A stretch of DNA of 64,000 bases from Macrostomum hystrix (GCA_950097015.1 CATNEN010000041.1:2542001-2606000); one strand, 5' to 3'. Shown: positions 10,301 to 58,689, counted from the stretch's first letter. Made by a program: numbers and translations. The notes: a model not told the origin generated them from the sequence alone.

Positions 10301-12588
10301 TTGTGGTCCAGGATTTATGGAGGGAAGACATTGCGGTCCAGGATTTATGGAGGGAAGACATTGCGGTCCAGGATTTCTGGAGGGAAGACATTGCGGTCCA
10401 GGATTTATGGAGGGAAGACATTGCGGTCCATGATTTCTGGAGGGAAGACATCGCGGTCCAGGATTTATGGAGGGAAGACATTGCGGTCCAGGATTTCTGG
10501 AGGGAAGACATTGCGGTCCAGGATTTCTGGAGGGAAGACATTGCGGTCCAGGATTTATGGAGGGAAGACATTGCGGTCCATGATTTCTGGAGGGAAGACA
10601 TCGCGGTCCAGGATTTATGGAGGGAAGACATTGTGGTCCAGGATTTATGGAGGGAAGACATTGCGGTCCAGGATTTATGGAGGGAAGACATTGCGGTCCA
10701 GGATTTCTGGAGGGAAGACATTGCGGTCCAGGATTTATGGAGGGAAGACATTGCGGTCCATGATTTCTGGAGGGAAGACATCGCGGTCCAGGATTTATGG
10801 AGGGAAGACATTGTGGTCCAGGATTTATGGAGGGAAGACATTGCGGTCCAGGATTTATGGAGGGAAGACATTGCGGTCCAGGATTTCTGGAGGGAAGACA
10901 TTGCGGTCCAGGATTTCTGGAGGGAAGACATTGCGGTCCAGGATTTATGGAGGGAAGACATTGCGGTCCAGGATTTCTGGAGGGAAGACATTGCGGTCCA
11001 GGATTTCTGGAGGGAAGACATTGCGGTCCAGGATTTATGGAGGGAAGACATTGCGGTCCATGATTTCTGGAGGGAAGACATTGCGGTCCAGGATTTATGG
11101 AGGGAAGACATTGTGGTCCAGGATTTATGGAGGGAAGACATTGCGGTCCAGGATTTATGGAGGGAAGACATTGCGGTCCAGGATTTCTGGAGGGAAGACA
11201 TTGCGGTCCAGGATTTATGGAGGGAAGACATTGCGGTCCATGATTTCTGGAGGGAAGACATCGCGGTCCAGGATTTATGGAGGGAAGACATTGTGGTCCA
11301 GGATTTATGGAGGGAAGACATTGCGGTCCAGGATTTATGGAGGGAAGACATTGCGGTCCAGGATTTCTGGAGGGAAGACATTGCGGTCCAGGATTTATGG
11401 AGGGAAGACATTGCGGTCCATGATTTCTGGAGGGAAGACATCGCGGTCCAGGATTTATGGAGGGAAGACATTGTGGTCCAGGATTTATGGAGGGAAGACA
11501 TTGCGGTCCAGGATTTCTGGAGGGAAGACATTGCGGTCCAGGATTTCTGGAGGGAAGACATTGCGGTCCAGGATTTCTGGAGGGAAGACATTGCGGTCCA
11601 GGATTTCTGGAGGGAAGACATTGCGGTCCAGGATTTATGGAGGGAAGACATTGCGGTCCATGATTTCTGGAGGGAAGACATCGCGGTCCAGGATTTATGG
11701 AGGGAAGACATTGTGGTCCAGGATTTATGGAGGGAAGACATTGCGGTCCAGGATTTCTGGAGGGAAGACATTGCGGTCCAGGATTTCTGGAGGGAAGACA
11801 TTGCGGTCCAGGATTTATGGAGGGAAGACATTGCGGTCCATGATTTCTGGAGGGAAGACATCGCGGTCCAGGATTTATGGAGGGAAGACATTGTGGTCCA
11901 GGATTTATGGAGGGAAGACATTGCGGTCCAGGATTTATGGAGGGAAGACATTGCGGTCCAGGATTTCTGGAGGGAAGACATTGCGGTCCAGGATTTATGG
12001 AGGGAAGACATTGCGGTCCAGGATTTCTGGAGGGAAGACATTGCGGTCCAGGATTTATGGAGGGAAGACATTGCGGTCCAGGATTTATGGAGGGAAGACA
12101 TTGCGGTCCAGGATTTATGGAGGGAAGACATTGTGGTCCAGGATTTATGGAGGGAAGACATTGCGGTCCAGGATTTATGGAGGGAAGACATTGCGGTCCA
12201 GGATTTCTGGAGGGAAGACATTGCGGTCCAGGATTTCTGGAGGGAAGACATTGCGGTCCAGGATTTCTGGAGGGAAGACATTGCGGTCCAGGATTTCTGG
12301 AGGGAAGACATTGCGGTCCAGGATTTATGGAGGGAAGACATTGCGGTCAAGGATTTCTGGAGGGAAGACATTGTGGTTCTGGATTCTGGAGGGAAGACAT
12401 TGCGGTTCTGGATTTCTGGAGGGAAGACATTGCGGTCCAGGATTTATGGAGGGAAGACATTGCGGTTCTGGATTTCTGGAGGGAAGACATTGCGGTCCAG
12501 GATTTATGGAGGGAAGACATCGCGGTCCAGGATTTATGGAGGGAAGACATTGCGGTCCAGGATTTATGGAGGGAAGACATCGCGGTCC
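7304..12588. repeat. 5.3-kb satellite of 29-30-bp units (AGGGAAGACATTGCGGTCCAGGATTTCTGG) with higher-order structure
   Basis: More than 170 tandem units. Mixed 29/30-mers in the left half; pure 30-mers from ~9930 to 12360 with a recurring 6-unit (180-bp) variant pattern. Confidence 0.98.
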
Positions 12589-12803
12589 CGGAGTAAAAAA
12601 ACTAACGCACTGCATGGGTCAGAAATATAAATTCAGAGCTTACGCACTAAGTTGATAAATTGCTGTCAATTTTCACTGCTGTCTTTCAGGTTTCCAACTC
12701 GGCCTGTCGTGTTTGCTTCACTGGCTACTGAGCAGTTGAGCCTGCTCTCCCAGCTGCTCGGTTCACTGTTTGCCGGTTAAAAGCGCTGAGTTGGACTCAC
12801 GCG

Positions 12804-14417
12804 ATGGCTTTGCCAGCTATGGTGAATTTTTCCCTGACCTTTCGAACTCATTATCGGACTGATTGGGGTCAGACGGTCGCAATTCTTGGAAACTGCCAGG
12901 AGCTTGGCAATGGAAACACGATTGGTCAAGGAAACAAGCTGACATGGAAAGGCAACAATGTCTGGGAGAAAAAAATCAGAATTCATATGGCTAGAGACAA
13001 GCGGCTTTCATTTAAACTTGTCATTTGTGATGATGAAAACAACCAATTAAGACAGGAAGAAACCAACCGAGAAGTGAATTTCGATCAAGGTGCCAATCTA
13101 AATGAAACTCTTTTCAAATTAGAAACCAACTGGGATCAGCCGGAAGTTCGTCTCTTCCCGAAAGTGGCAACCCAGTCAGTAAGCATTTTAATTTACGCTG
13201 AGTACAAAAGAGGACCTAATGAACCTGAACCCGAGAAGCTGCTCGTTCTCGGCAACTATGTCAGGCTGGACAATGTCGACCACAATGAAATGAACTTCAT
13301 CCAGCGTGACCTGGCAAAAGGAATTTCGAAATGGTGGCTGAAGGTCACGCTGCAAATGACGCGAAGGATCATTGATGATCGATGGAAGCTGCCAGAAACT
13401 GGCCCTAACGGAGAATTTAAGCCGCTTTCCCTGAGACTCATGGCGATAAGAGAAGGCGAGCAAATTAAGCTTGAAGAAGACCAGTTCGAGCCAAACCTAG
13501 CGATTATTGAAGAGTTCAGAAACAAATTTAAATTGCAGTGCACCTTCAATCACAGTCTGATTCTAAGCCCATATAAACGCTGGGTCTGCATTCCAATGCC
13601 CATTGAAACATGCCTGATCCTACGAGACAGCATACTTACTCTGCTCCTCAACATACTGAAGGTGCACCTGCCTGACCCAAACAATACATATGAAAATGTC
13701 AAAAATAAGTATGCCCAGTGCCTGGTTCCGAAGATTAAATTGGATGGCGGTTACGATGGGAGGACTAGTAGAACAAGCGGAGCACCTCATACATTCCACG
13801 ACATTTGGGGAGACGGGCTGGTTGATGAAAGTGGTGCCTTCGCAGACCAAACATGCAAAATAAGAAGTGCGATAGAGTATGTTCGACTGCGAAAAGAAAC
13901 AAATCTGACGGGAAACCGATACAAAGTATGCACACGCCTAACCATAAAGTATCACGCTAGGCAAGGCAACGTGCATGAGCTCTTTAATGGGGCCGGAGAA
14001 AACCAATGGTCCAGCTTCCTGCAGGGAGAGCATTCCGATCCTGAGTACAAAAACGCTCTGATCAAACTGGCGCACTGGGTCAGGGATCAGAGTACTGGAG
14101 AGAACGTGTTGCAGCTGTTCTGCCACAGCGCCGCCATCGTCCGCGGCCGCATGGAGGCCTCGCTGGTGAGCAAGGAGTGCGACGTCATGCACAGCGACTG
14201 GTACTGGTTCTGGAAGAAACACATGGAGGTGGCCGCCTGCTGGTTCGTGCTCATGATGGCTGCCTGGCGACGGCTTAATCAACTTAATCCTACTGAATAC
14301 CCGATCCTAAATAACGAAATTTTCAAAGAAAAAATGAAAGAAGACCGCGCGCCGTTTCGTCCAAACTTTTACGGACGTGAACCTGAACCTGCACAGCTAC
14401 CTGCAAATCAAGCTTGA
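12804..14417 (+). CDS. Intronless 537-aa protein: N-terminal CBM20-like (starch-binding fold) domain, probable second degenerate CBM20, unrecognised C-terminal domain
   Basis: Uninterrupted non-repetitive ORF from ATG to TGA. FRTHYRTDWGQTVAILGNCQELGN...VWEKKIRI...FKLVI...TNR follows the CBM20 pattern. Upstream acceptor TCTTTCAG|G at 12689/12690. Confidence 0.8.
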   Translation: MALPAMVNFSLTFRTHYRTDWGQTVAILGNCQELGNGNTIGQGNKLTWKGNNVWEKKIRIHMARDKRLSFKLVICDDENNQLRQEETNREVNFDQGANLNETLFKLETNWDQPEVRLFPKVATQSVSILIYAEYKRGPNEPEPEKLLVLGNYVRLDNVDHNEMNFIQRDLAKGISKWWLKVTLQMTRRIIDDRWKLPETGPNGEFKPLSLRLMAIREGEQIKLEEDQFEPNLAIIEEFRNKFKLQCTFNHSLILSPYKRWVCIPMPIETCLILRDSILTLLLNILKVHLPDPNNTYENVKNKYAQCLVPKIKLDGGYDGRTSRTSGAPHTFHDIWGDGLVDESGAFADQTCKIRSAIEYVRLRKETNLTGNRYKVCTRLTIKYHARQGNVHELFNGAGENQWSSFLQGEHSDPEYKNALIKLAHWVRDQSTGENVLQLFCHSAAIVRGRMEASLVSKECDVMHSDWYWFWKKHMEVAACWFVLMMAAWRRLNQLNPTEYPILNNEIFKEKMKEDRAPFRPNFYGREPEPAQLPANQA

Positions 14418-14496
14418 AGACAGACTTATCGCTGTGAAACTTGCCGAACCGAATCAAAACTGAAAGTTAATTGTTTTCCCATCCATTAATCATTGT

Positions 14497-15270
14497 TGCA
14501 GTGTCTGTTTTTCCTATCTACTGTTTGAATACAGCGTCTGTTTTTCCTATCCACTGTTTGAATACAGTGTCTGTTTTTCCTATCCACTGTTTGAATACAG
14601 CGTCTGTTTTTCCTATCCACTGTTTGAATACAGTGTCTGTTTTTCCCATCCACTGTTTGAATACAGAGCCTGTTTTTCCTATCCACTGTATGAATACAGC
14701 GTCTGTTTTTCCAATCCACTGTTTGAATACAGTGTCTATTTTTCCCACCCACTGTTTGAATACAGTGTCTGTTTTTCCTATCCACTGTTTGAATGCAGTG
14801 TCTGTTTTTCCCACCCACTGTTTGAATACAGTGTCTGTTTTTCCCACCCACTGTTTGAATACAGTGTCTGTTTTTCCTATCCACTGTTTGAATGCAGCGT
14901 CTGTTTTTCCCACCCACTGTTTGAATAAAGTGTCTGTTTTTCCTATCCACTGTTTGAATACAGTGTCTGTTTTTCCTATCCACTGTTTGAATACAGTGTC
15001 TGTTTTTCCCACCCACTGTTTGAATACAGTGTCTGTTTTTCCTATCCACTGTTTGAATACAGTGTCTGTTTTTCCCACCCACTGTTTGAATACAGTGTCT
15101 GTTTTTCCTATCCACTGTTTGAATACAGTGTCTGTTTTTCCCATCCACTGTTTGAATACAGAGCCTGTTTTTCCTATCCACTGTTTGAATACAGTGTCTG
15201 TTTTTCCCATCCACTGTTTGAATACAGTGTCTGTTTTTCCCACCCACTGTTTGAATACAGTGTCTGTTTT
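14497..15270. repeat. 33-bp minisatellite (CAGTGTCTGTTTTTCCTATCCACTGTTTGAATA)
   Basis: About 23 tandem copies. Confidence 0.97.
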
Positions 15271-15272
15271 TC

Positions 15273-15487
15273 AGAGCCTGTGTTCCTATATCCTGTTATA
15301 CTGCAGTGCCTGTGTTCCTATATCCTGTTATACTGCAGTGCCTGTGTTCCTATATCCTGTTATACTGCAGTGCCTGTGTTCCTATATCCTGTTATACTGC
15401 AGTGCCTGTGTTCCTATATCCTGTTATACTGCAGTGCCTGTGTTCCTATATCCTGTTATACTGCAGTGCCTGTGTTCCTATATCCTG
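15273..15487. repeat. 32-bp minisatellite (CTGCAGTGCCTGTGTTCCTATATCCTGTTATA)
   Basis: 6-7 near-identical copies; the same unit recurs at 25550-25636 and ~26330-26357. Confidence 0.95.
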
Positions 15488-15612
15488 CTCTAGCTTTAAG
15501 AAAGCGGCTTTTTCTTCTTTCTAAACGTTAAAAAGTCTTCCTCTTTATTTTTTTGCACCAAAGTCTGTAAGCTCTAAGCAGTAATAAGCTCTTGCTAGAA
15601 ATCACAGACTTA

Positions 15613-15701
15613 GTTACAGGTGCAGTTACAGACTCAGGTGCAGTTACAGACTCAGGTGCAGTTACAGACTCAGGTGCAGTTACAGACGCAGGTGCAGTTA
15701 C
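15613..15701. repeat. 18-bp minisatellite (GTTACAGACTCAGGTGCA), left flank of the Gypsy element
   Basis: The same unit resumes at 24179. Confidence 0.9.
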
Positions 15702-16013
15702 TGAAATAACTCTAGACTGGTGGTATTTAGAACGAAACGTAAACAGTCAGAGCTCCACGCTCCTGAGAACAGCGATATATATTTTATGCGACGGCACGTT
15801 GGGTGTAAGGATTAGGGGGTGATAAAATAGAGCGAACAATGATTTGAAAGTCAGCCAGTTAACCAAACGGCTGCCAGCGCGGTGTACTCAGCGTACGCGC
15901 GCTGGCTGCACATGGCTGCACCGCACAATGAAATGATATTCAGCCAGTTAACAGACAGCTGCCAGCGCGGTGTACTCAGCGTATACGCGCTGGCTGCAAG
16001 TCACTACATAACA
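15702..16013 (-). repeat. 3' LTR of the Gypsy element (312 bp)
   Basis: Starts TGTTATG right after the PPT and ends TTATTTCA. Contains a duplicated ~55-bp segment with GCCAGCGCG..CGCGCTGGC hairpins. Confidence 0.85.
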
Positions 16014-17865
16014 CTTCTCCCACCATAGTTCAGACGGTCTGGGCTCTTGCGGATCCTGGTCGATCTTCGAGGCACGTGCTGCGGTGATTGATCCCGCCGC
16101 TGCTGCTGCTGCGGTGCCATTGTTGGAGGCGTTGGAGGCGTTGGCGGTGGCTGATGTAGTGATGTCGGCGGCGGCGGCGGCGGTGGGGGCGGCGGCGGCG
16201 GCGGCGGCAGCGGTGTTGTCGGTGTCGACGATGGCGGCGGTGCCAGTGGTAGGGGCGGTGGCAGTTGTGGCGGCTGACAGACCAGCCCCCGAGGCTGTTG
16301 GTCCACATTGCGGTGAGTCGTATCGCACCGCATCTGGTTTGCATGGCGCCGAACCGTTCTGTTGTCCGGCAGGTTGCACTGGTACCAGTTGCTGCCTTCA
16401 ATGCCCACCACCGTTGCTCGCGTCTAGCTCCGTTCCTTTCCACAGCTGAAGTCTTGAACGAACACTGCCTCGCCCTCCGCGAAGCTCCGCCCGTGCGCCC
16501 CAGAGTCATGCTGCAGCCTTTGCTTCTCCTGGTTCTCGAGGACCCGCTTGGCAATGTCTGGCCTGGGTACATCGAGGAGCGTTCGCAGCGAACGGCGCAT
16601 CAGTAGCTCACAAGGAGCCACTCCTGTCGTTGGGTGCGGCGTTGTGCGGTAACTCAGCAAGAATCTCGCCAGCTGCGTCTCCAGAGAGCTGCCATCGCTC
16701 GCTTGTTTTTTCAGAGAGCTCTTGACTGTCTGCACAGTTCGTTCGGCTTGGCCATTCGAAGCTGGGTGGTAGGGCGGCGTGCGGATGTGCCGAATGCCGT
16801 TCTTAGCACAGAAGGTTTCGAACTCCGAGCTTGCGAAGCAGGGACCGTTGTCCGAGACAATAGCATCCGGCAGGCCGTGGGCACTGAAGGTCTGTCGTAG
16901 CTTCTCTATCGTTGCAGAGCTTGTCGTTGCCGACGTCACGTGAACGTCGATCCACTTGGAGTAGGAGTCGACTACCACCAGGAGCATTCTTCCTTGGACG
17001 GGCCCTGCGAAGTCGATGTGAATCCGCGACCAGGGCCTTGTCGGCAGCGGCCACGGTTGCAGTGGCACCTCCGGACCGACTCGCTGGTGCTTCTGGCACT
17101 CCTGGCATCCCGCTGCCTTCGCCTCGATATCACGGTCCATGCCGGGCCACCAGATGTAGCTCCTGGCCAGCGACTTCATGCGGGACGCGCCAGGGTGTGC
17201 GACGTGCAGCGATTCCAGGAGACTGGATCGACAGGCCTCCGGAATGACGACGCGGCAGCCCCAAAGAATGCAGCCGTCTTGGACCGAGAGCTCCTGTAGG
17301 CGTTTGCCGAAGGGCGTGAGGTCAGGGGACAGGGATCCCTTGTCCGGCCAGGCAGAGAGACAGAAACGAATTACCTGAGACAATGTGGCATCGCGGCGTG
17401 ACCAGTTACGCACATCTGATGAAGTCACCGGACCGGCGTCGAGGCAGTCCATCACTTAAATGACTTCCGGTGGCACTGGAACGTCCTTGGGCCCGCTTGA
17501 TGCAGGAAGGCGGCTCAGGGCGTCCGCCCGGAGCATAGAGGTCCCGCTACGATGTACTAGACGGTAGCGATAGGCTGTCAGGAGCAGCGCCCATCGTTGA
17601 ACTCGGCCGGACGCCAACGTTGGAAGCGGCCGTTCCTGCCCAAGGAGGCCTAACAGCGGCCGATGGTCCGTCAGCAGGTTGAACTCTCGGCCAAACAGAT
17701 ACTGGTGGAATTTTCTGACGCCAAAGACCAGCGCGAGTGCCTCCTTCTCCAGCTGACAGTAGTTCTTCTCAGCGGCACTGAGACTGCGCGAAGCGTACGC
17801 GATCGGTTTGTCCATGCCGTTCTGACGATGGAAGATGACAGCGCCCAGGCCGTACTGCGAGGCGT
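16004..17865 (-). pseudogene. Gypsy pol 3' half (RNase H, integrase, Pro-rich tail)
   Basis: ORF pieces 17456-17815, 16424-17455 and 16004-16411; in-frame TAA at 17456-17458 and a frameshift near 16420. Confidence 0.9.
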
Positions 17866-17893
17866 GTGTGTGTGTGTTGGTTCAGATCCCTCG

Positions 17894-20800
17894 CTAGGCA
17901 TACGGGGGGCGCGCCAGCGCGCCCGACGCCTCGACGAAGGCCCGCACCCCTTCTGGGTCGTTCTGCAGTGGGGACATAGAGCCGTTGATAGCCTCTGGGA
18001 TGTGAAGCCGGCGCTCCTCCGCCCACCTGGGGCAGTCTAACAGGAAATGCCGGGTGTCTTCTTCGGGGGCATTGCAGTGCGGGCAGGCAGCGGTTGGGTC
18101 GCGGCCCCAACGATGCCGGGTGGCCTGCAGGAAGGGCGCCCGGTTGGCCCGAAGCTGGTACAGCGCCACCTCGGCCGTCCGCGGCCAGCCTGGCCGGTGG
18201 ATGAACTGCGCTCCGCCGCAGAGCCTGTGGGGGTGGTCCGCCGGAACTAGCTGATTATACTCAGCCAATTCGGCCGCTCGTCCCTGGCGACGGAGGGCGG
18301 CCCTGGCGGCCGACACGGGGACAGGCTGGGGGTCTTGCTGCATGGCGGACCCTCTCCGGGCCAGCTCATCGGCGGCCTCGTTAAGCGCAAGGCCTGCATG
18401 CCCTGGGATCCAGATGACCGTTGGCCTGTGCTCGCTGGCCAGCTGTTGGAGCAGGATCGCGGCTTGCGCGGTGGCGTGGTCTTGCAGGCACTTGGTCGAG
18501 GACTGCAGCCGCTGGAACAGGGCTCGTGAATCGAACAGCAGCCAGATCGCCGAGCTCGGCTTCCCCCGAAGGAGACCGAGGGCTGCCTCGAGCCCCGCCG
18601 CCGCCGCGGCCGCTTCTGAAGTGGTCGAACTGGTCCACCGTCCGGTCGGGATACTGCCCTTGACGTCGGGGCCGATAGCATTACGCCGGATGATGTAGCC
18701 TCCACCGCCATTTCTGAAGCCTTCTTCCGCCGCCCCGTCTGTCCAGACTTCGAGGTACGGCGGGTCGCTCCGGTGAAGGGAGTCCAGCAGTTCTAAGGCC
18801 CTCGCGCGTCGGACCTCCGGGGGCTCCTCGCGCCCAGCATCCGCCGCAGCGAAGCGGGCCGAGTGATGAGGGGTCCACGGCCGGTGCAGGCAGGAGAGCG
18901 GAACGCACCCCTCAATGTTCCGAGCGTGACATCCCGCCTCCTCCAGGGCCGCAAGCGCCGTCTCTCTCCAGCACCCGCGGGTCCCGCCCCCTCTCGACCG
19001 CAGTCTCGTCGTGTTCGGCGGGGCGTCGGTTAGCTTCCGCAGCGGGTGGCCCTCGCTGAACTGGCGGCATCGCAGGTAGAGCTCAGCCGCCCGAATCCGG
19101 CAAATGATGTCCAGGGGCTGTAGCCCGGCGTCCGCGATCAGCGCAGCAGCCCGGGCACCGGGACTGACACCGGTGATGGCCCGGGCCGCGGCGTAATTCA
19201 TCGACTCCAACCGCTCCCGGTGGGTACGAGCCAGAAAAGGCCACCACACCTCCGCCGCGTACAGCCCCGCCGGGCGAACGTAGCCGCAGTAGAGCCGACG
19301 AAGCGTATCAGCGTCAGCTCCCCACCGGCGGGAAGCCACAGCCCGCAGGGCGTTGAGCCGGCTCCGCATGGCAGCCAGCGCGCGACGGGCCTGCTCGGCG
19401 AAGGTGACCTGGGAGTCCACGAACACCCCCAGGATGCGCGCCTCCTTCCGGCAGCTGATCGTCTGCCCACCGACCTGGAGCTGAACAGAGTTGCGGAAGG
19501 CCTCGGTATTCTCCACGGGATGGGTACTCACCAGCAGGGCCTCGGTCTTGTTTGGGGCCAGTTCGAAGTGATGCTGCTGGCACCAGGTTTCTGCCGCTTC
19601 CAGCGCTTGTTGCATGTTCTCCGCCGCTGCCGCCGCAGTGCCCGCCGACGTCTTGATGGACAGGTCATCGGCGTATTGCAGCGGCTTACAGAGCGGGGCG
19701 GCGGACTGGATGGCGTCTGGCAGGGTACAGGTCGCAATGTTGAATAGCAGCGGGGACAACGGACTGCCTTGCGGGACTCCCTCCTTCAGGATCTTGGGCC
19801 GGCTCATGCTATCAACCCAGCGCACTCGAGCTCTCCGGTCAGCCAGAAACGCGCGGATCCAGCGCAGCCACCGTCCCGGGGCGCTCGCTCGAGCCAGTTG
19901 CCGCAGCACCCCGAGGCGCCAGGTTCGGTCAAAAGCAGCGAAGAAGTCGATCGCTGCCACCAGGGTCCTCGTCATCGGCCGCGTCTGCAGGTCGTCAAAG
20001 GCCGGCTGGGCCAGCTGCGCTAGGGCGTCAACCGTGCTGCGGCTGGCGCGAAACCCGGACTGCGCGTCCGGGAGCAGGCCGATCTCCTCCGCCCAGGCCG
20101 CCAGCCTGCGCTGCACCATCGCTTCTAACGTCTTCCCGACACAGCTGAGCAGCGAGACAGGTCGGAAGGATGCCGGGTCGCTCTTGGGCTTGCCCTTCTT
20201 GGCAATGGGCGTGATGATGGCCGTGCGCCAGCCCGATGGAACCTTGCCCTCCAACCAGCTCCGGTTGAGCAGGGAGAGCAGGGCGACCCGTCCGATCGAC
20301 GGGAGGTTTTGAAGAAAAGCCGGGAGAACTCCGTCTTGACCCGGCGCCTTCCCCTCGATCTCCCTCAGAACGACGTCCAGCTCTGCCAGGTGGAACGGGG
20401 TGGACCGCAGGTCGTCCGTCTCGTTCTGCAGAGCGCGGCGGACCTCCCTCCTGGCAGCCTGCTGATCTGTCTTCGGAACGCGGAGTCGGCTTGCCTCCGC
20501 ATAGGTCGCCATCGCCATGTCTGCCTTCTCCCGGTCAGAGGTCGCGGTCTTGTTGCCCTTGCGGAGCGGGGTGTCAGGGAGCGGCTCATGCGCTCGGCCA
20601 TCGAGGGCCCTGATGGTGTTCCAGACCTTGTTGTCTGGGGACCTGGCCGACAGCTCCGCGACGAAACCTTGCCAGGACTCGGTCTTCGCCTGTTGGTACA
20701 CTCGGTCGGCTTGGTCGCGGGCAGCGCGGTACCTCGCCGCGGCTTCCAAGTCCCCTGGCGCGGCTCTGGATGCCGCTAAGGCGCCGCGAGTGGCGCCCTG

Positions 20801-21847
20801 GGCCCGTCTGCATCGCTCGTCCCACCAGCTCTTGGCCTTCTTAACTCTGCCCTTGGGGATGCAGCTCGCCGCGTCCAGGATCCTGCGGCAGAAGTCTGCA
20901 TTGGCGGCCTCCACGGACCGAAAGCCGTCCGCCGACCAGCCCAGGAAAAAATCACCCGCCCGCGTCGCGTAGGTCGGCCAGTCCGCCCGTCGCAGGTTGA
21001 AGCCAGCTGGGCGGCGTCGCTCATGGGTTTGGGTGAAGGCGATGGTCAGCAGCAGAGGAAGGTGGTCCGACCCCATGGCGTCCCCCACGCGCCAGCTGAT
21101 CCGGCTGGACCAGACAGCACTGCAGAGCGACACGTCGGGCGCCGACTCACCACCCCCCGGGCTCACTCTAGTGGCACTGCCGTCGTTGAGCGCCATCCAG
21201 CCGTGGTCGCTCAGCCAATCGTCGAGCTCGCTTCCAGGGGGGTCCGGATCAGCATTCGGGTCCCAGCTACCGTGAGCGTTGAGGTCGCCCATCAGCAGCC
21301 AGTGCCCATCGGTGGGCCAGCCGTTGGTGTGTAGGGCCCCGTCTCGGTCGTCCGCGTCGGAGTGCCGTACAGGTGGGCGGTAGAGGTTGGTGAGGTGCAG
21401 CGGCTTGGACTTGTCCCCGAACAGACGGATGGTCAGCTGCTCCAGGGCCGCGTTGACGGGGGTCCGCAGACCCGCCTCCACCTCTTCATGGGCCAGGCCT
21501 TGTTTGACCAGAGTGAGCAGGCCTCCATGGTGACCGCCACCCCCCCGGTGGACGACCCGGTCGCGGCGGTGGACGGTGTAACCGCGGAGCTTGGGTGTGG
21601 GCTCTCTCTCGGTGAGGTTAGATTCCTGCAGAAGGGCGATGTCTATTTTGTTTTCCTCCAGCAGCCGTTCAAGTGCCGGTCGACGCGCCTGTAGCCCGTT
21701 GAGGTTCCACTGCAGGACACGGAGATCGGCCTGGATAGGACCGGGGTTCGGCTCAACATCCCCCGACAACAGAACCCGGCGGCGAGACCAGTCGGGGTTG
21801 GCCTGCCACCCTCCCAAAAACCCGCCAGCGGGTTGGGGTGCGGACAT
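17894..21847 (-). CDS. LINE polyprotein (1317 aa from first in-element ATG): 2A-like peptide, AP endonuclease, RT, RNase H, CCHC knuckle
   Basis: GDVEPNPGP; APE motifs QWNLNG, LLQE, NLYRPP, MGDLNAH, GSDHLP; RT GVPQGSPLSP and QYADD; RNase H TDG..SEA..FDS..WIPGH..NEAAD; CPHC..H..C. No stops or frameshifts. Confidence 0.95.
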   Translation of the reverse strand: MSAPQPAGGFLGGWQANPDWSRRRVLLSGDVEPNPGPIQADLRVLQWNLNGLQARRPALERLLEENKIDIALLQESNLTEREPTPKLRGYTVHRRDRVVHRGGGGHHGGLLTLVKQGLAHEEVEAGLRTPVNAALEQLTIRLFGDKSKPLHLTNLYRPPVRHSDADDRDGALHTNGWPTDGHWLLMGDLNAHGSWDPNADPDPPGSELDDWLSDHGWMALNDGSATRVSPGGGESAPDVSLCSAVWSSRISWRVGDAMGSDHLPLLLTIAFTQTHERRRPAGFNLRRADWPTYATRAGDFFLGWSADGFRSVEAANADFCRRILDAASCIPKGRVKKAKSWWDERCRRAQGATRGALAASRAAPGDLEAAARYRAARDQADRVYQQAKTESWQGFVAELSARSPDNKVWNTIRALDGRAHEPLPDTPLRKGNKTATSDREKADMAMATYAEASRLRVPKTDQQAARREVRRALQNETDDLRSTPFHLAELDVVLREIEGKAPGQDGVLPAFLQNLPSIGRVALLSLLNRSWLEGKVPSGWRTAIITPIAKKGKPKSDPASFRPVSLLSCVGKTLEAMVQRRLAAWAEEIGLLPDAQSGFRASRSTVDALAQLAQPAFDDLQTRPMTRTLVAAIDFFAAFDRTWRLGVLRQLARASAPGRWLRWIRAFLADRRARVRWVDSMSRPKILKEGVPQGSPLSPLLFNIATCTLPDAIQSAAPLCKPLQYADDLSIKTSAGTAAAAAENMQQALEAAETWCQQHHFELAPNKTEALLVSTHPVENTEAFRNSVQLQVGGQTISCRKEARILGVFVDSQVTFAEQARRALAAMRSRLNALRAVASRRWGADADTLRRLYCGYVRPAGLYAAEVWWPFLARTHRERLESMNYAAARAITGVSPGARAAALIADAGLQPLDIICRIRAAELYLRCRQFSEGHPLRKLTDAPPNTTRLRSRGGGTRGCWRETALAALEEAGCHARNIEGCVPLSCLHRPWTPHHSARFAAADAGREEPPEVRRARALELLDSLHRSDPPYLEVWTDGAAEEGFRNGGGGYIIRRNAIGPDVKGSIPTGRWTSSTTSEAAAAAAGLEAALGLLRGKPSSAIWLLFDSRALFQRLQSSTKCLQDHATAQAAILLQQLASEHRPTVIWIPGHAGLALNEAADELARRGSAMQQDPQPVPVSAARAALRRQGRAAELAEYNQLVPADHPHRLCGGAQFIHRPGWPRTAEVALYQLRANRAPFLQATRHRWGRDPTAACPHCNAPEEDTRHFLLDCPRWAEERRLHIPEAINGSMSPLQNDPEGVRAFVEASGALARPPYA

Positions 21848-21867
21848 CGAAGCGACATCCGGGGAGC

Positions 21868-21935
21868 CGGAGCATTTGGCACAGAACGCATCTGTGACAC
21901 CTGTCCCCACGTGAAGGGAGCTCCGTTTGACAAGC
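21868..21935 (-). ncRNA. HDV-like self-cleaving ribozyme at the LINE 5' end
   Basis: Manual fold: P1 GCUUGUC/GACAGGU (G1.U wobble), P2 CGGAGC/GCUCCG, P3 CCC/GGG, L3 UUCACGU, 1-bp P1.1 (C-G, with U.U), P4 CACAGA/UCUGUG, J4/2 CCAAAU with candidate catalytic C. Confidence 0.85.
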
Positions 21936-21947
21936 ACTGCGAGGCGT

Positions 21948-24156
21948 CGCACTCCAGGTAGAGGTCCTCTGCCGCATTGTAGTGCACCAGGACACTTGGG
22001 TGCGTGAGTAGCTGCTTTGCTGCGGCAAACGCTTTGGCCTCACCGCGGTCCCACCGCCACTTCGAGTTTTTCTCCAGTAGCCGGTGTAGCGGTGCCAGCA
22101 CGCTGGAGAGATTCGGCAGGAACTTCCCGTAATAGTTGATGAGGCCCAAGAAGCTCCTGAGCTGAGTCGTGTTCGTCGGTGCTGGTGCATCTAGCACGGC
22201 TTGGACTTTGTCATCGAGTGGGTGCAGTCCCTCTGCGTCGATGCGGTGACCCAGGTACGTGACCTCGTCCTGGAAGAATCTGCACTTCTCGAGCTTGCAG
22301 GTCAGGCCGGATTCCTTGAAGACCCTCAGGACCTCTCTGAGATTGTGCAGATGGCTCGCGTCGTCCTCTCCCGTGATGATGACATCATCGATGAAGGATG
22401 CTGTGTGCGGAATTCCACGCAGCAGGTTGTCCATCACTCGTTGGAAGACGCTTGGGGCAATCGACACCCCAAAAGGCAGTCGGGTGTAGCGCAGGAGTCC
22501 GACGGAAGTGTTGATTGTACAGACCTCTTGGGCTTCCTCGTCCAGCGGAAGCTGCATAAATGCGTTGGTCAGGTCCAGCTTAGAGAACTTTTGCCCGCCA
22601 GTCAGCCGGGCGAACAGTTCGTCGATGTTTGGCAGGGGGTACGCCTCCGGCCGAATCGCTGTGTTGACTCCCTGCTTGAAATCTGCACAGACGCGGACGC
22701 TGCCGTCCGATTTCATCACTGGCACGATCGGTGACGCCCAGTCGGAGTTCTTGACCGGCATCAGCACTCCTTGGTCGATTTCCTTCTGCAGCTGCTGTTC
22801 GACTTTTTCACGCAGCGCGAAAGGAACAGGTCGCGCCTTGAAGAACTTCGGTCTGGCGGTCTCCTTGAGACTGATAGACACTGGCTTGCCGTTGAACTCT
22901 CCCAGGCCTTGGAAGACATCTGAGAACTCCTTGATGAGCTTCTCAGCAGGGTCACCGATGCGCTTGACGGACTGCCAGTCCAGGCGCAGCTGAGCCAGCC
23001 AATCCCGACCGAGGAGGCTCGGACCGTCGCCGGCGACAACGAGAAGCCGCAGTTGCGCTTCATCAGAGTCGGCGGACACTCGCACGCGGACGGACAGCTG
23101 GCCGAGCACGCGCACGGTCTGACCGGTGTAGGTGCTGAGTTGAATCGTTGACCGGGACAGTGTAACCAGTCCGTCCAGGTTCGCCTTGAATGTGCGCTCA
23201 GACATCAGCGATACAGATGCACCTGTGTCTACCTCCATCTCGTGCTGCCGCCCTTCGATAAAAACCGATGTCCTGATCGGTGGAAAACTTGACTGCGGCC
23301 GATCCGCCCCCAGATGATAAAACGGATACGACACCTCATCTGGACTCGCGCTCGTGGTCACCTGCTCCACCAGCTGGTGTGTCTGCTGCTGCCGCAGTGC
23401 ATCTGTCTTACAGGCCTTCGCTGTGTGTCCGGTCTTGCTGCACTTAAAGCAGCGCTTGTCCACGAAGGGGCACTTGCTGGCCAGGTGACGGGTTGAGAGA
23501 CAGCGAAAGCAGCGCCGACGACTTTCGGCTCCCAGCTGTCTGCTGTCTTCCTCTGGTCGCTGCCGCTCCATCCGTAGCACAGCGTCGCTTTCCGTCGATG
23601 GCGTCGGTGCTGCCGAGTTCGCTGATCCCAGCGACCGGCAGTTGATGGCTGCCGATTCGCCCGCCCGAGCGATCTCCTTTGCTGTGTCGAGGGTGAGGGT
23701 CGGCTCCATCAGCAGCCGGCGTTGGATTTGCTGATCCGCGATGCCGCACACCAGTCTGTCCCGCAGCATGTCCGACAAGCTGTTGCCAAAGTTGCAGAAC
23801 TCGGCCAGCTTCCGCAGCTCTGCCAGAAACTCTGCCACAGTCTCTCCAGCACGCTGGGCTCGGTTGTTAAAGTGGAACCTTTGGACGATCTCACTTGGTC
23901 TCGGGTTGAAATGACCGCTCAGCAGCGAACAGATGTCGTCGTACGATTTGCCAGCAACTTTGGCTGGAGAGCACAGGCTTCTAGCCAATTGAAACGTCTT
24001 CCTTCCACAGACACTCAGCAGGGTTGCTCTCTTCTTGCCCTCGTCAGTGATGTCCTGGGCGAGAAAATGCTGCTCCAGGCGCTCCTGGTATTCATCCCAG
24101 GTTTCGACGGAGTCTTCAAATTCTCCGATTCCGTGGGCCGGCATGGCTGGGCCCAA
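21948..24156 (-). CDS. Gypsy gag-pol 5' half (gag, protease, RT, start of RNase H)
   Basis: ORF 21643-24156 is open up to the LINE junction at LECDASQ; CFRCLSTRHLASKC and CFKCSKTGHTAKAC knuckles. Confidence 0.92.
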
Positions 24157-24178
24157 GTCTCGTCGCCACTGAAATAGA

Positions 24179-24388
24179 GTTACAGAGTTACAATCTGAGT
24201 TAACTACAAACCTGAGTTACAGACTCAGGTGCAGTTACAGACTCAGGTGCAGTTACAGACTCAGGTGCAGTTACAGACTCAGGTGCAGTTACAGACTCAG
24301 CTGCAGTTACAGACTCAGGTGCAGTTACAGACTCAGGTGCAGTTACAGACTCAGGTGCAGTTACAGACTCAGGTGCAGTTACAGACTC
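24179..24388. repeat. 18-bp minisatellite (GTTACAGACTCAGGTGCA), right flank of the Gypsy element
   Basis: About 10 copies, same unit as 15613-15701. Confidence 0.95.
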
Positions 24389-25394
24389 TTTTTCACTTCT
24401 TGGAAATGTACTTCTTTTCCAGCGCTTTGTCAAGGACATGAACAAATTCTTTCCTATTCTCATCCTTCATGCCAGTCTTTGCAGCTCCAAGAAGAACAAT
24501 AGCCGCTTATAGATGTTTGGGGTGTTTATGATTCCTGTTCCAGGTGGGGTTGATTGTTGTTGAACTGGGCATTCAAATGACTGGTCAGTTCCGGATGAAG
24601 CTGAAGTGTCAGGTAGGGGTGTGTGATGGGGTGTGAGAACATTTTGCTTGATTCTATTCATTCGGTCTGGGAGAACTGCTCCATGTGTTGCCGCTCTGTT
24701 GGGTATTGTTCCTTGGGTATTAAGCTACTTTCAAGCGGTCGGACTGCTCGAGTTGACTCAGCACTTCTTCTTCTGTGAAATGTTGCTACTGCTGTGGCGG
24801 TTGTTGCTGTTGTTGTGTGTGTGACTTCGAACAAAACGTTCCTAACATCGGAGCCACTCGGGGTGACACCGCTGCAGAAACTGCTCCACCTTCCGCTCGT
24901 CTCTGAGGCTCTCGCAACCATTGAAGCCTAAGTCAGCTCGAACGGCGTCCCATCTCGGGCAGGCGAACCAGTGGTCGGGCAGGCGAACCAGTGGTCGGGC
25001 AGGCGAACCAGTGGTCGGGCAGGCGAACCAGTGGTCGGGCAGGCGAACCAGTGGTCGGGCAGGCGAACCAGTGGCGCCAGTAGTCAGTCTTTCTGCAGTG
25101 TCCGGTCCGGAGCTGCGCCATCAGAACCTCGCGGCTGTTGTTGTTGCTGTTCTCGATATTTCATGACTTTTTAAATCTAGTCAGGTTGACACCGTTGTCG
25201 CACATTATTTTCAGAACTTGTGGGTCCCTTAGTATTTCCATACCTCTAGCAAGAGCAAAAGTCACCAGATCTCTGTAGTTCTTTAGCTGCTTCTCGGAGA
25301 TTTTCTCTTGGTTCTTAGTCATAAAAGTCAGTATTGTTTCTGTGAAAAGTGCTCTTTTAGTTTCTTGTGAGCCAGACAGAAATACTGCTTTCAT
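24386..25394 (-). pseudogene. Decayed Lys-rich ORF(s) of unknown identity, possibly part of the Polinton-like remnant
   Basis: Pieces MKAVFLSGSQETKRALF...RFKKS (25161-25394) and ..MKDENRKEFVHVLDKALEKKYISKK* look protein-like and A-rich like the capsid ORFs; stops and a repeat insertion interrupt them. Confidence 0.3.
24957..25077. repeat. 20-bp tandem repeat (GGGCAGGCGAACCAGTGGTC) x6
   Basis: Direct tandem copies. Confidence 0.95.
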
Positions 25395-25636
25395 TCATGT
25401 TAGTTCATTATAAATGTTTTTTCTCCATAAACTAACCCAAAAACATATTTCCCCTCGTTCTACTGGTCCAAAAATGTTATCCGTCACTTTTAGTTGTGAT
25501 TCTGTGTGTGGTGGTTGCGGCTGTATCGGTGCCTTTTGCACCTGGGTTTCCTGTATGTCGTCTCCCTTATACTGCAGTGCCTGTGTTCCTATATCCTGTT
25601 ATACTGCAGTGCCTGTGTTCCTATATCCTGTTATAC

Positions 25637-26241
25637 TGTTGTGGTGCCGGTGTCTCTGGCCTTGTGGTTTTGTTAGGCCTTCCTCACCCAGCGCCGTCTT
25701 GGCTGCCCGGTGCCCAGTGCCGCCATCTGATTGGCTGGGCGCGGGCATTGTGTGCCTATCCTACCCCAGCCCTGCGTGGCTTTGCCCTCACGCCAATCAG
25801 CTCTGCGTAGCTTTGCCCGTCCACCCGTCCAGCGCGTACAACCCTACCCCCCAGCGCGCTGTAGGCTTTGTTTGTGCTCCGCCCCTGTCTGCCCCCTTGT
25901 CAGCCCTTAAGGTATCGTTTTCTGCCCGGGCCAAGGCTACCTCTCTCCCCCCTTGCGAACTTTAAAAGATCGTGCCGTAAAGACGGTCTCTTACGGCGAA
26001 GGCTCAATTTATTGCATAGCGAAGTGATTATTGACGAGTGATTCCGAGCGTATGGTTTATTAAAGTGCAAAAATTGCCGACAAATACATTCAGCGTCATC
26101 CTGCCATCCTATCGTGCGTCCCGACCGGTAAGCACTGTATTTGTGTCTGTCCTTTCGGGGTGCCAGGTCCGCACGGAGTACTGTAATAATCTTAGAAGTA
26201 CTGTGTGAGCGTCCTAACGCCACCAGTCCCTGACTGCAACA
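25637..26241 (+). mobile_element. Probable solo LTR (~605 bp)
   Basis: Begins TGTTG and ends CAACA, is non-coding, contains ATTAAA at ~26057, and interrupts the 32-bp minisatellite. No clean TSD; the right edge has a 15-bp local duplication. Confidence 0.45.
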
Positions 26242-43727: not shown

Positions 43728-44098
43728 GGGGGTCAGTGGCAGGGCAGTTAACATGTTTGCCCTCTGGCACCATGGTCCCTGAGTTCGATTCCATGGCAAG
43801 GCCACATTCATTTGGGGAGCAGCTGCGGAGAGAAGGCTTGGGAGCTTGTCATGAAAATTTATGCCCTTGAGGGCCAACCTCCAAGGCACAGTGAAATATA
43901 CACTGCCTGATGATTAAAAAGTCAGGGCAGATGTACACACCTACATGAGTGTGTGCCTGCATAGGCCTACAGTATCTGTGTATGTGCTCAGGAGTCAGCA
44001 AAATGGGCAGAATTGCCTCCTTGCTAGCTGTGGGTCTAGTTTCACTAAATGATATGCCTTTGCTCACAGCCCTCCTGCAATTATTATTATTATTATTA
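43728..44098 (+). mobile_element. tRNA-derived SINE (family 1), (TTA)n tail
   Basis: A-box-like TGGCAGGGCAG, B box GAGTTCGATTCC at 43781; body shared with 45973-46135 and 63583-63870. Confidence 0.8.
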
Positions 44099-45972
44099 GG
44101 ACTTAACACATAGCTCAAAAATGTAATTGATAGATAAAGAAAAGATTTAAGAGAAAAAATTAAGTGGAATATAATAAAACATAATTTTATACCTATGATA
44201 GATTCTGAAACTTATCTATCTATACTTAGTCTATAATTACTAAGGAAAATATACTAGGCCTACTAAAATATTTTAAATATGAATTATAGGCCTAGAAATA
44301 AGTAAACTTTCTAAAATAAATCATTTAGCATTTAGGAGCCTACAAGTAGGGCCTAGTCAATATCCCTAGCTTTATTAACTTTTATCTAGTGAAAAAAACT
44401 AAGTATTTGAAATTTTTTTTCCATATTTGTCTTTATTTATATTCAATATCCTTGCAATTAATATGCCTATTCAACAGCAAGGCCTAACTTATTTAGTTAT
44501 AAGCTAAGCAAACATAATTAAGATAGCTAGACATACCTTCAGAAAACTAGCCTATAATGGTAGATAGCAGAAGGCTATAGAGCAGTCATAAGACCTACAT
44601 TTGTGAATAATTGCAAGAAGAATAAACCACTACACTATAATTTTTAAAGGGAATAAAAAGCAAGCTAATATAATTGGTTGTTAATAAGTTTCATTACTTA
44701 CTGAAGATCCCACCGAAAGCAGCTGTCGACCACATTGGTACAACATCCGTGCATACATCTCTTATTTATGATGAGTATTTTCCCTTGGTCTTACTATAAT
44801 TATGATTTGATTAACACATTAATCTGATTGAGTTTGACCTTCCACTTAGACTTATAATAAGCTACTCAAGCTAACCATAGTGAATTGCTGGGTGAGAGAA
44901 ATAAATCAATGTCAATGGACCATTTCAGAATTATAAAAAGTCCAAATTGTTATATTTATTAGTTTATTAATCAATAATAAATATGGACCAGGTAATAAGG
45001 CAAACTTAAAGTTTTCTGAATGACAGGTAAATATCGCACTCAGTAAAGTACTACAGAGTTAAGTACAATATATAAAAACGAGATCGTTACAATAAAAACC
45101 GGGTTCAAATGAATGTTATTCTTGTAACCTACTTATTCGAATTCGTGGCATGGCTTGGTGCCGCATGGGCCTTTTTATAGTATAACAAACGCAAAAATAA
45201 AAAAAGTAAAAAAATTGAAACAAGTACATAGGATAACTCTAATTACCGCAGTATCTGTTTACTCTAAGATAAGGAATAATCTTACAGTGGGGCCAAGGAA
45301 TGCGTTTTGGGGATAAGTGTTGTAAATATTTAAAGCAAAAATATATATAAAACGCAACTCTGTTATGCCTAAACTAAACCTTTTGGTTCTCGACTACAAA
45401 CACAGCCTTTGAGTTTGCGCCTTGTGCCCAGACAGCAGAAAGCATGCACAGCAGTATATACAGTATGTATACAGTTGCTGCATAATTGACTATAGTTTAC
45501 GAAGTGACCAGCACCCAATCTTACACTACGTATTGCAGGCCACAATTACAACGCAGCGTTTATCACATGGAAACGATTTTTTCCATCGAATCAAGGCCCA
45601 GTGGACAATCACGAAACCACAAGCTAAAGTTTTTGTTGCACATGAGGAAACTGGAGGAGAAAAGCTCGTCACTAATTAGACACAGAAAATTCCCATCGAT
45701 TCTCTACGGAAGACTAATTGCGAAGTTCGTAGTAGTAGTAGTAGTATTAGTAGTAGTAGTTAGTAGTTATATTAGTCGTCCTTGGCACACAATATTCAGA
45801 CGAAATTGTCATGTTCAGAGTTATTACTAACATACGTCGTTATAGTTTTTCTATTAATCCCCCTTTATATTGAATTAACAACATTGAAAAGTCGCCACCT
45901 TTGCATGTGAGAATCAAGCATCACAACTTACGCTAACTTTAAACGGTGTAATAAGTTAGGCGATGAGAAAGT

Positions 45973-46135
45973 CGGGGCAGATGTACACTGCGCTGTGTGC
46001 CTGCGTACGGTATCAGTGTGCGTGTGCTCAGGAGTACATCTGCCCCGGCAGCGAAATAGACTGAATGGCCTCCTCGCTGGCTGCGGGTCTACTGTCACTG
46101 ATGAAATGTGTGCCCACAGCTCTCTCGCAGATGAT
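45973..46135 (+). mobile_element. 5'-truncated copy of SINE family 1
   Basis: GGGCAGATGTACAC..GTGCTCAGGAGT..CCCACAGC shared with the other copies; 14-bp perfect inverted repeat at 45973-45986 and 46034-46047. Confidence 0.7.
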
Positions 46136-53561: not shown

Positions 53562-54003
53562 ATCACCTGATATCATGCACACAGATCCTTGCATCACCTG
53601 ATATCATGCACAAAGACCCTTGCATCACCTGATATCATGCACAAAGACCCTTGCATCACCTGATATCATGCACAAAGACCCTTGCATCACCTGATATCAT
53701 GCACAAAAACCCTTGCATCACCTGATATCATGCACACAGACCCTTGCATCACCTGATATCATGCACAAAAACCCTTGCATCACCTGATATCATGCACACA
53801 GACCCTTGCATCACCTGATATCATGCACACAGACCCTTGCATCACCTGATATCATGCACACAGACCCTTGCATCACCTGATATCATGCACACAGACCCTT
53901 GCATCACCTGATATCATGCACACAGACCCTTGCATCACCTGATATCATGCACACAGACCCTTGCATCACCTGATATCATGCACAAAAACCCTTGCATCAC
54001 CTG
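53562..54003. repeat. 31-bp minisatellite (TGCATCACCTGATATCATGCACACAGACCCT) containing a reiterated minus-strand donor ATCAG|GTGATG
   Basis: About 14 copies. Confidence 0.95.
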
Positions 54004-54589
54004 ATTTTAACTCGATTCGCGGGTGCCAGAATGGCATTCAAATTTTTTAAATTTGCCAGTTGTGGAGGCCGCGTCAATGCAGCAGCTGCTGCAGCCAGCG
54101 CCTTATCAGGGCGTCGGACGCCATTAGCGACATCCACAACGTCTTCTTCGTCGCCAATTGGCGGAGCACCTAGTTTTGTTCGCAGGGGTTCAAGAAGGTC
54201 CAGTTTAAGCAAGTGCAGTGCAATGATCAGTAAAGAGCTTGACAGCTTGAGATTAATGACAAACCAACCATCTTGGACCAGCTACCCAGACTTTGCTAAT
54301 AAGCTTATTGTAGAATTCATCTTTCTGCTTTTCTTGCTTTTCACAAAACCGAGCTTTTCAACCTTTTTGTCACAAAGAAGTTTAAAGGGCAATTAACTAA
54401 CTAGACTTACCATTATACTGGTATGATAACATTTTAGCTTTCAATCATGCCATCTCATTACTACCCTCAATAGTTTGATTATTTTTCCTTAGCTATTAAA
54501 CAATTTATGATTCTCAAAACATACGCATAAATCTTTTCTGCTAGGCATATATTTATAGTTTTTACTAAATGCTAAGTATGATACTAGAT

Positions 54590-54790
54590 AAAACTAGATG
54601 GTAGAGGTTGTAGCCTCGCGACTTGAAGGTCGGGGGTTTCGATTCCCGACTCCACTGTAACAATTTGTGCCCTTTAGCAAGACACTTAACTCCATGGACT
54701 GAACAGCTGTATGCAGCCTTCAGATGTGCTATGCAATAGCTGCAGCTGTGCTGTTGGCTGCACATCTGGCCCAATTGGGGGCAGGTGTAA
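54590..54790 (+). mobile_element. tRNA-derived CORE-SINE-like element
   Basis: A box TGGTAGAGG, B box GTTTCGATTCCC, then TGTGCCCTTTAGCAAGACACTTAAC resembling the CORE/MIR domain start. Confidence 0.65.
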
Positions 54791-57647: not shown

Positions 57648-57716
57648 TGTACACAGATGGTACATCAGATGGTACACAGATGGTACACAGATGGTACACA
57701 GATAGTACATAGATGG
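57648..57716. repeat. 11-bp repeat (TACACAGATGG)
   Basis: About 6 copies. Confidence 0.85.
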
Positions 57717-58689
57717 TATCTGTGAGATTATAACCGTGTATTCAAATTCAATGCAAGCATTCTGTGCATGTATTGAAGGCGAAAATATGCTCAGCTTAAA
57801 GTAGTATTTATTAAGTTTCTACTATCGAAACTTAACTAGATCAAATTGGGTCTATTTTTCACTGCATTGTTAGTTTTGCTACTGTGTGTAGCATGACCGG
57901 GCTTAATATTGAGTTTTCAAAGTATAGTGCATGCATTATTCAACTGAGACGAATATACAAAGAAACTGATATAGCTTTTAAGGATGCATCAATCACACCA
58001 ACAACAAAAGATCATACTTGGACATCATTATCAGGTATAATTTTTTTGACTAATCATTTGTGAGCTTTTATTTTTATTCACCCATGTTTTGAAGTCAAAT
58101 TATTACTTTTCTAGCTATAGTTTTTCTGATTGATCTCCACTTTAAAGTATGGGACTTTTAGTAAGAGTCCTGTGTTTTTATTGACCAAAGAAGAAATGTG
58201 TTACAAAGGTTATATTTAAATTATAAATCATTTTGTAAGAATATTAAATGTAAGTTTTAAAAATGTATTACTATAATATAAATTTGAATTTTTATCTGAA
58301 TTTCAAAGTATTGCTTAAAAAACAAGCTTCATAGTAGCTAGAGCAATAGCCAATGTCAAATATAATACAGATAGCAGTATAGCTAACAAATCATTTTCTA
58401 TGACTACCAATACACACCAATACAATACATACCAATTTTTTATGTTATTATTTGTTTCTTGCCTTAACAAAAAAAATTCAGTAATAAATTGTGTAAAATT
58501 GAATTAGGTCCTGTCCTGAGTTGTGACTAGCTCAGTGTTCTAGTTCAGTTCTATCCAGTTAAACCAATTTTATAACTTTGCTTTGAGCCTCAGCAAAATC
58601 CCAGCCTGCCACCCCATCTACCTCACCAAGAGCGGCACACTCGCGAGGTTGCTGCCCACCTGGACCCCTTAGTCGAGGCGCAGCTTCAA

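Follow-up and report, generated by a model that had tools for sequence, protein, structure and literature searches.

A hepatitis delta virus (HDV)-like ribozyme, a 2A peptide and an open reading frame (ORF) coding for apurinic/apyrimidinic endonuclease (APE), reverse transcriptase (RT) as well as RNase H occur together in the trypanosome element L1Tc (PMC5814959, PMC3185411). 2A sequences have also been described, with activity assays, in single-ORF APE-type long interspersed nuclear elements (LINEs) of molluscs, cnidarians, echinoderms, amphioxus and frog, where 40-80 aa separate them from the N-terminus (Odon et al. 2013, PMC3708506). HDV-like ribozymes head the LINEs R2, Baggins and RTE (Ruminski et al. 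2011, cited after the review PMC6765202; also PMC3774820). The ribozyme-headed Baggins and RTE elements are said to be promoterless and transcribed from introns or long terminal repeat (LTR) elements, and an action of the ribozyme fold resembling that of an internal ribosome entry site (IRES) has been proposed for R2 and L1Tc (PMC6765202). Here, a 64-kb stretch of DNA from Macrostomum hystrix was analysed (the window, to whose first letter all coordinates refer), which carries on its minus strand a non-LTR retrotransposon of 4,070 nt (17866-21935 (-)). The comparison with related elements supports a putative ribozyme fold, a predicted 2A peptide and a single APE-RT-RNase H ORF as a conserved unit in a LINE family. 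The whole proposal, an autonomous single-ORF LINE with a 5' expression module of three parts (ribozyme, start region and 2A), was given a probability of about 0.72.

The element extends from a G at 21935 (G1) to 17866, where an (AC)n tail ends. G1 directly abuts a target-site duplication (TSD), a perfect 12-bp repeat, ACGCCTCGCAGT, which was read directly at 21936-21947 (-) on the 5' side and at 17854-17865 (-) on the 3' side. The boundaries were also examined in public-run contigs, that is, contigs assembled from public runs of the same organism. In four of these runs, contigs were found that join 17853 straight to 21936, with 12 letters matching on both sides. They represent insert-free copies of the surrounding sequence and therefore fix both boundaries independently of the direct reading. 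The tail was read as (AC)7, and its last AC is common to tail and TSD, which offers a microhomology for priming. An earlier, sequence-only reading of this DNA had reported a perfect TSD and an (AC)n tail, and both are borne out. The tails of relatives are other microsatellites, namely (GAA)n, (GA)n and (AAC)n.

A frame on the minus strand is open over 17894-21952. Its first in-frame ATG is at 21847 and its stop at 17894, giving a single ORF of 1317 codons plus stop (17894-21847 (-)). Only 88 nt precede the ATG, and the stop is followed by a 3' untranslated region (UTR) of about 16 nt and the tail (together 17866-17893 (-)). This leaves no room for an ORF1, in line with what the sequence-only reading had stated. 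Pfam matches follow the order Exo_endo_phos (21062-21715 (-), E=3e-12, also Exo_endo_phos_2), RVT_1 with its YADD motif (19490-20188 (-), E=2e-31), RNase_H (18347-18754 (-), E=3e-9) and a weak zf-RVT match. The last corresponds to a C-terminal CX2CX8HX4C zinc knuckle (18032-18085 (-)) formed by C1255, C1258, H1267 and C1272. In the PDB, the RT matched L1 ORF2p and the R2 RT (1e-13). No RT clade label was obtained from cluster look-up, protein atlas or PDB. An alignment of 12 family sequences showed the catalytic and metal-binding residues to be invariant or nearly so (APE E/D/N/D/H, YADD, RNase H D-E-D-D and CX2CX8HX4C); the earlier statement that all catalytic motifs are intact thus agrees with the endonuclease, RT and RNase H residues kept across the family. 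APE and RT domains, a TSD and a 3' repeat tail are all present and LTRs are absent, as in APE-type non-LTR elements. By its sequence, the element is a complete, recently inserted, putatively autonomous single-ORF APE-type LINE with intact-looking catalytic residues. The very short 3' UTRs of this family share a (G)GGNCCAGAA-like motif (window 17866-17893 (-); L001 4128-4160, L002 4148-4185, L003 5445-5505, L004 4283-4350; L numbers denote related elements), while the tail microsatellite varies among (AC)n, (AAC)n, (GAA)n and (GA)n.

The first 68 nt (21868-21935 (-)) fit by eye the double pseudoknot plan of HDV-like ribozymes. The helices are P1 (GCUUGUC/GACAGGU, in which G1 and U form a wobble), P2 (CGGAGC/GCUCCG), P3 (CCC/GGG) and P4 (CACAGA/UCUGUG); L3 reads UUCACGU and J4/2 reads CCAAAU. 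The order and size of the helices are HDV-like, with a 7-bp P1 from the first base, then P2, a 3-bp P3 with a 7-nt L3, and P4. A plain minimum free energy fold of 76 nt was unremarkable (z = -1.0), which would be expected of a pseudoknot. With cmscan, no match to the HDV-type models of Rfam was obtained, whether 6 kb were scanned at E<=1 or 121 nt at E<=10. Therefore, the fold was tested by comparison with relatives, using model-guided alignments; MAFFT versions, in which P1/J1-2 and P4 were misplaced, were dropped.

A covariance model trained on the window copy and L002, with P1, P3 and P4 as pairs, recovered this structure at the 5' end of each of L003, L004 and L001. P2, which is not in this model, was found to be 100% paired in the five-sequence alignment, with double changes in 4 of its 6 pairs. 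A second model, with P2, P3 and P4 as pairs, matched L086, L085, L089 and L090, none of them in the training set and each match lying upstream of the 2A. The fold is present ahead of nine related elements with 37-57% protein identity. Covariation was evaluated on eight sequences, seven from the family and L068, whose match lies in an unrelated context. In this alignment 92.3% of the pair cells were standard, as against 36-50% when the partners were slid. Compensatory changes were observed in 17 of 22 pairs, and they back all four helices; none of 500 shuffles attained the observed value. A sequence-blind descriptor, which accepts only perfect P1, P2 and P3 helices together with a P4 hairpin and a J4/2 that contains C, matched the window, L003, L004, L005, L086 and L089, compared with 1 of 130 shuffles. 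L005, in which P3 is inverted (GGG/CCC), was missed by the covariance models and caught by the descriptor. At 88% identity in the ribozyme, L004 and L089 are nevertheless separated by a double change in P3, from G-C to A-U. The G1-U wobble occurs in the window, L003, L004 and L068. The CCAA straight after P4, in J4/2, was invariant (8/8 sequences), and a candidate catalytic cytosine is among these Cs. The model matches, the covariation, the descriptor and the L004/L089 double change together argue that the fold is real and of HDV-like class. The 5' end of the element thus carries a conserved covarying fold of this class, as the sequence-only reading had proposed in calling it a ribozyme, and the fold is predicted to self-cleave.

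A further HDV-like fold was observed beside more distant LINE relatives, at L068 6501-6576 (+) and L060 6953-7037 (-), with a near-complete P1 (6/7 pairs, G1-U) and full P2 and P3. These two were the sole ribozyme-like matches among L006-L084. The fold lies outside the matched ORFs and is unlinked to them; in L068 it follows an RT ORF on the 3' side and may head an adjacent element. No 2A is visible there up to the contig ends. Weak model matches elsewhere in the window (59750-59815, 58640-58697 and 59933-59992) were judged to be due to chance.

Several observations weigh against a cleaving ribozyme coupled to 2A translation. To the silence of Rfam is added P1.1, in which, instead of two pairs between L3 and the bases behind P1, by eye only one G-C pair is possible (the G after P1' with the third L3 base). 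L002 is without the first three P1 pairs, resembling a 3-nt 5' truncation, P1 is disturbed in L001 and L085, and L090 has a 48-nt insert in L3, so that some copies would not cut. In L087 and L088 (32-33% identity), which have a 2A, no ribozyme was found, even with filters off and by the descriptor. The most conserved stretch of the ribozyme (L3/P3', 21906-21913 (-)), TCACGTGG, holds a CACGTG E-box, and the first 77 nt of L1Tc are promoter and ribozyme both (PMC5814959); a role as internal promoter, like that of L1Tc Pr77, is conceivable. The sense-oriented nesting in LTR elements, taken up below, comprises two cases (n=2). Finally, the sequence-only reading had pointed to a frame open through the ribozyme. 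This is true, and each of the seven members examined keeps the 2A frame free of stops from G1 onwards. However, 11 of 14 alternative frames are likewise free of stops, and from one member to another the frame stands in a different register to the ribozyme core, so the open frame carries no weight alone. As evidence of translation it was rejected, being no better than chance in a GC-rich leader.

The points on Rfam, P1.1, the E-box and L1Tc could also be accommodated by a 5' fold that is structural and not catalytic, serving in 5' protection, in RT binding or as an IRES-like platform, with the 5' end set by an internal promoter that starts at G1, like Pr77 of L1Tc; covariation, moreover, proves a fold and not catalysis. 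Such an account is considered very unlikely. Every HDV-like helix is found in the right order and size (7-bp P1 with G-U at the first base, 3-bp P3, 7-nt L3, invariant C-rich J4/2), a pure promoter would not need the compensatory base changes, and the E-box is missing from L001, L005, L085 and L086, which retain the fold. Among the more remote relatives from the metagenome scan (L006-L084, 22-44% identity), no such ribozyme was detected upstream of the ORFs.

A further part of the putative module, the 2A core DVEPNPGP, is coded by 21760-21737. The predicted skip site lies between G36 and P37, after a leader of 36 codons (M1-G36, 21740-21847 (-)), and the APE domain as defined by Pfam begins 8 residues past it. 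VLLSG stands just before the motif, and the C-terminal consensus D(V/I)ExNPG/P with a hydrophobic upstream tract is matched: VLLSGDVEPNPGP. The sequence-only reading had placed this motif at the same coordinates, directly before APE and 36 aa after the ATG at 21847, which was read again and found correct. The motif is unique in the six-frame translation of the 64-kb window. NPGP is kept at the same place in every relative for which 5' DNA is available (12 of 12, among them L001-L005 and L085-L090, 32-57% protein identity), and L089 retains the 2A despite a later 1-nt deletion that shifts the frame. An N-terminal xNPGP was found in 37 of 154 representative homologues, drawn from the first two protein searches. 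No N-terminal 2A was found in L006-L084. Ribosome skipping at this site is predicted from the motif and its conservation.

The roughly 30 residues ahead of NPGP show conservation, too. In 9 of 10 members a Phe codon precedes the Asn codon of this motif by 72-75 nt (72 nt in the window copy; position -24/-25), and it is always UUU although the ORF favours UUC 24:9. This residue or its codon could reflect an extended 2A contact or an RNA signal. The conserved Phe is encoded by a U-run, (G/U)UUUU (window 21776-21832 (-); L001-L005, L085-L090). Between the U-run and the 2A core a hairpin was predicted (window ~21770-21815 (-), alignment columns 123-167), whose loop CCCGAC also encodes a conserved Pro-Asp. 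The hairpin forms the main helix of the overall predicted consensus structure, in which 9 of 16 pairs showed compensatory changes. The 20 nt between the ribozyme and the only in-frame AUG (21848-21867 (-)) carry a CCNGG motif conserved in relatives. A pairing is conceivable between this CCUGG, which closely follows the ribozyme on its 3' side, and the CCNGG in the Pro-Gly codons of the 2A (21737-21748 (-)); covariation would be invisible for such a pairing, because both sides are fixed. A -1 frameshift was also considered, on G GGU UUU with the downstream hairpin and an out-of-frame AUG at 21858. It was rejected, as the heptamer lacks conservation and no frame of L003, L085 or L086 contains an AUG.

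The position of the start codon varies within the family. In the window copy an in-frame AUG lies 20 nt past the ribozyme and in L001 17 nt past it, whereas L004 and L090 have an in-frame AUG solely inside the ribozyme. L002, L003, L085 and L005 have no in-frame AUG at all. L086 has a lone in-frame AUG, which is situated downstream of the conserved Phe and precedes NPGP by 12 codons, so that from the ribozyme start to this Phe no in-frame AUG is found in L002, L003, L085 and L086. Since the conserved peptide begins well upstream, several members either initiate without AUG or are defective. The AUG-less members fit a ribozyme-assisted non-AUG initiation in which the 2A would set the N-terminus, and they find a parallel in R2 and L1Tc with their proposed IRES-like fold (PMC6765202). 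Variable or non-AUG initiation had been suggested by the sequence-only reading, and the start codon is indeed not conserved, as that idea predicted.

It could also be argued that translation of the window copy simply starts at AUG 21847 and that the 2A acts as an attenuator or releases a small functional leader peptide. The AUG 17-20 nt after the ribozyme in the window copy and L001 is in keeping with this, as is the conservation of the ~30 residues before NPGP as a peptide (Phe at -24/-25, Pro-Asp), and L1Tc2A has been reported to regulate relative protein abundance (PMC5814959). However, the AUG is not conserved, since L002, L003, L085 and L086 lack one upstream of the Phe and yet have 1,280-aa ORFs after the 2A. 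An AUG start of this kind was judged doubtful as the full explanation; it is, at the same time, compatible with a 2A that fixes the N-terminus.

The copies of the element were examined in the public-run contigs. In run X1, 73 contigs fell on the stretch, 30 of them at least 99% alike, 21 at 95-99% and 22 at 90-95%. At least four element positions of the window copy differ from every X1 contig, which places it about 0.1% from the majority sequence. In X2, X5 and X6, contigs are joined at 17864 to flanks of different sequence and thus stem from other insertion sites. This is a multi-copy family with very young members, which supports the sequence-only reading in so far as it spoke of a recent family. 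Some copies have internal deletions (skips of 436-1461 nt).

These deletions, together with the 90-95% variants, would also be expected of a family that is young but no longer mobile, the window copy being an intact-looking fossil. Insertion polymorphism, with filled and empty sites, could not be separated from other copies of the host LTR element, from which the empty-site contigs may derive. Nevertheless, the 3.95-kb ORF is intact with every catalytic residue kept, the 12-bp TSD shows no mismatch, nothing is missing from the 5' end, and the divergence of ~0.1% from the majority contig sequence goes along with many contigs at least 99% alike. A fossil therefore appears unlikely, and the element may be active at present.

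The element is inserted in an LTR retrotransposon of the same orientation (15240-25670 (-)), identified by Pfam matches on the flanking ORFs and by shared repeats. Gag, protease and RT lie upstream of the insert, together with the first part of RNase H, and the rest of RNase H and the integrase lie downstream. The pol reading resumes exactly across the empty site. LTR-like repeats are found at ~15240-15740 and 24190-25670, with the shared repeat families D3 and D4. The closest relative, L002 (57% identity), is also nested sense-wise in the pol of an LTR element (L002 1-84 and 4186-5221). The two hosts differ, their integrases being 31% identical. These cases are suggestive of co-transcription with the host, and they agree with published promoterless ribozyme LINEs (PMC6765202).

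Some further features of this surrounding were observed. The LTR-like ends contain 18-nt and 32-nt tandem repeat arrays with unequal copy numbers between ends, and in the host element a stop codon, at ~17455, separates RNase H from integrase. Two long tandem arrays lie beside it, at 12025-12682 and 14398-15390, with periods of 30 nt and 33 nt. The GC content is 66-68% in the LINE and ~60% in the host LTR element (16000-24000), compared with 34-35% at 44000-46000 and 54000-58000. All metagenomic relatives of the LINE are GC-rich.

On the basis of these data, the following cycle is proposed for the ribozyme-2A LINE. The element is probably transcribed within a longer host transcript, here that of the LTR retrotransposon in which it lies in sense orientation. 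The 68-nt HDV-like pseudoknot would cut the RNA just 5' of G1 and so generate the exact 5' end that is later copied back to DNA. Ribosomes would start on the uncapped RNA within the ribozyme or shortly behind it, using an AUG if there is one (here 21847) and a non-AUG codon otherwise. A leader of ~30 aa ending in DVEPNPG/P would then lead to the skipping of one peptide bond, and the APE-RT-RNase H-CCHC protein would be released with a fixed N-terminal proline, whichever start had been used. This protein would nick the target, prime on the (AC)n tail by AC microhomology with the TSD and produce the 12-bp duplication. Cleavage, skipping, the mode of initiation, co-transcription, independence from a promoter and present activity are all predictions from the nucleotide sequence.

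The proposal can be extended, tentatively, to a single co-evolving translation module made up of the fold, the AUG-less leader and the extended 2A of ~30 residues. The fold would recruit ribosomes to uncapped RNA and the 2A would act as an "N-terminal eraser", so that a promoterless 4-kb LINE could be expressed from any host transcript; such a module would be shared by a widespread GC-rich family in many metagenomes. In this extended form the idea is less probable than its opposite and is put forward as a speculation.

Among described systems, there is a close likeness to L1Tc/ingi of trypanosomatids (Ingi clade). Shared features are one ORF, in which a 2A at the N-terminus is followed by APE, RT, RNase H and a Cys/His motif at the C-terminus, the placement of an HDV-like ribozyme within the first ~70-77 nt, the lack of ORF1 and a TSD of ~9-12 bp (PMC5814959, PMC3185411, PMC6765202). 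In contrast to the two C2H2 fingers of L1Tc, which have chaperone function (CX2CX12HX3-5H; PMC5814959), one CX2CX8HX4C knuckle is found here, and the tail is a microsatellite instead of poly(A). The label "L1Tc-like" given by the sequence-only reading thus fails for two L1Tc traits. In L1Tc the first 77 nt also function as a promoter, a role that would be hypothetical for the present element.

The 2A directly before APE and the absence of ORF1 are shared with the animal LINEs of Odon et al. (2013), for example Ingi-1_AC of Aplysia and elements of CR1/L2/Rex1/Crack. A 5' ribozyme is mentioned neither in that paper (PMC3708506) nor in its companion review (PMC3894237), with 0 occurrences in both, and ribozymes are not mentioned in recent 2A surveys. 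In contrast to those accounts, the 2A described here is physically and, by the comparison of relatives, evolutionarily coupled to the predicted ribozyme. With R2, Baggins and RTE the element would share the cut at the first element base, an ORF without conserved AUG and a proposed cap-independent initiation, but those elements are not reported with a 2A; restriction-like endonuclease and ribosomal DNA specificity are, in addition, features of R2. The predicted formation of the LINE 5' end by a self-cleaving ribozyme recalls the non-LTR elements of the flatworm Schistosoma, in which the ribozyme is of another class, a twister variant, and for which the abstract reports no 2A (PMC8501958).

In the searchable literature, the terms HDV-like, 2A-like and retrotransposon co-occur solely in a review on Trypanosoma cruzi. 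The novelty emphasised by the sequence-only reading was overstated, since 2A in animal LINEs (PMC3708506) and HDV-like ribozymes heading promoterless animal LINEs (PMC6765202) had both been published. Each part is known, and their combination is known in trypanosomes; the conserved module in another LINE family appears to be undescribed.

2A in LINEs and HDV-like ribozymes at LINE 5' ends have been treated separately in the literature and are unlinked outside trypanosomes. As a speculative outlook, a self-processing single-ORF retrotransposon of 4 kb might serve as the basis of tools for RNA-templated insertion. Should the coupling hold, it would provide a simple reason for the presence of 2A in these elements, which is that a defined N-terminus is restored on an RNA without a cap or a fixed start. 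The family itself offers natural variants, with and without AUG and with intact and broken P1, which make this idea testable by reporters.

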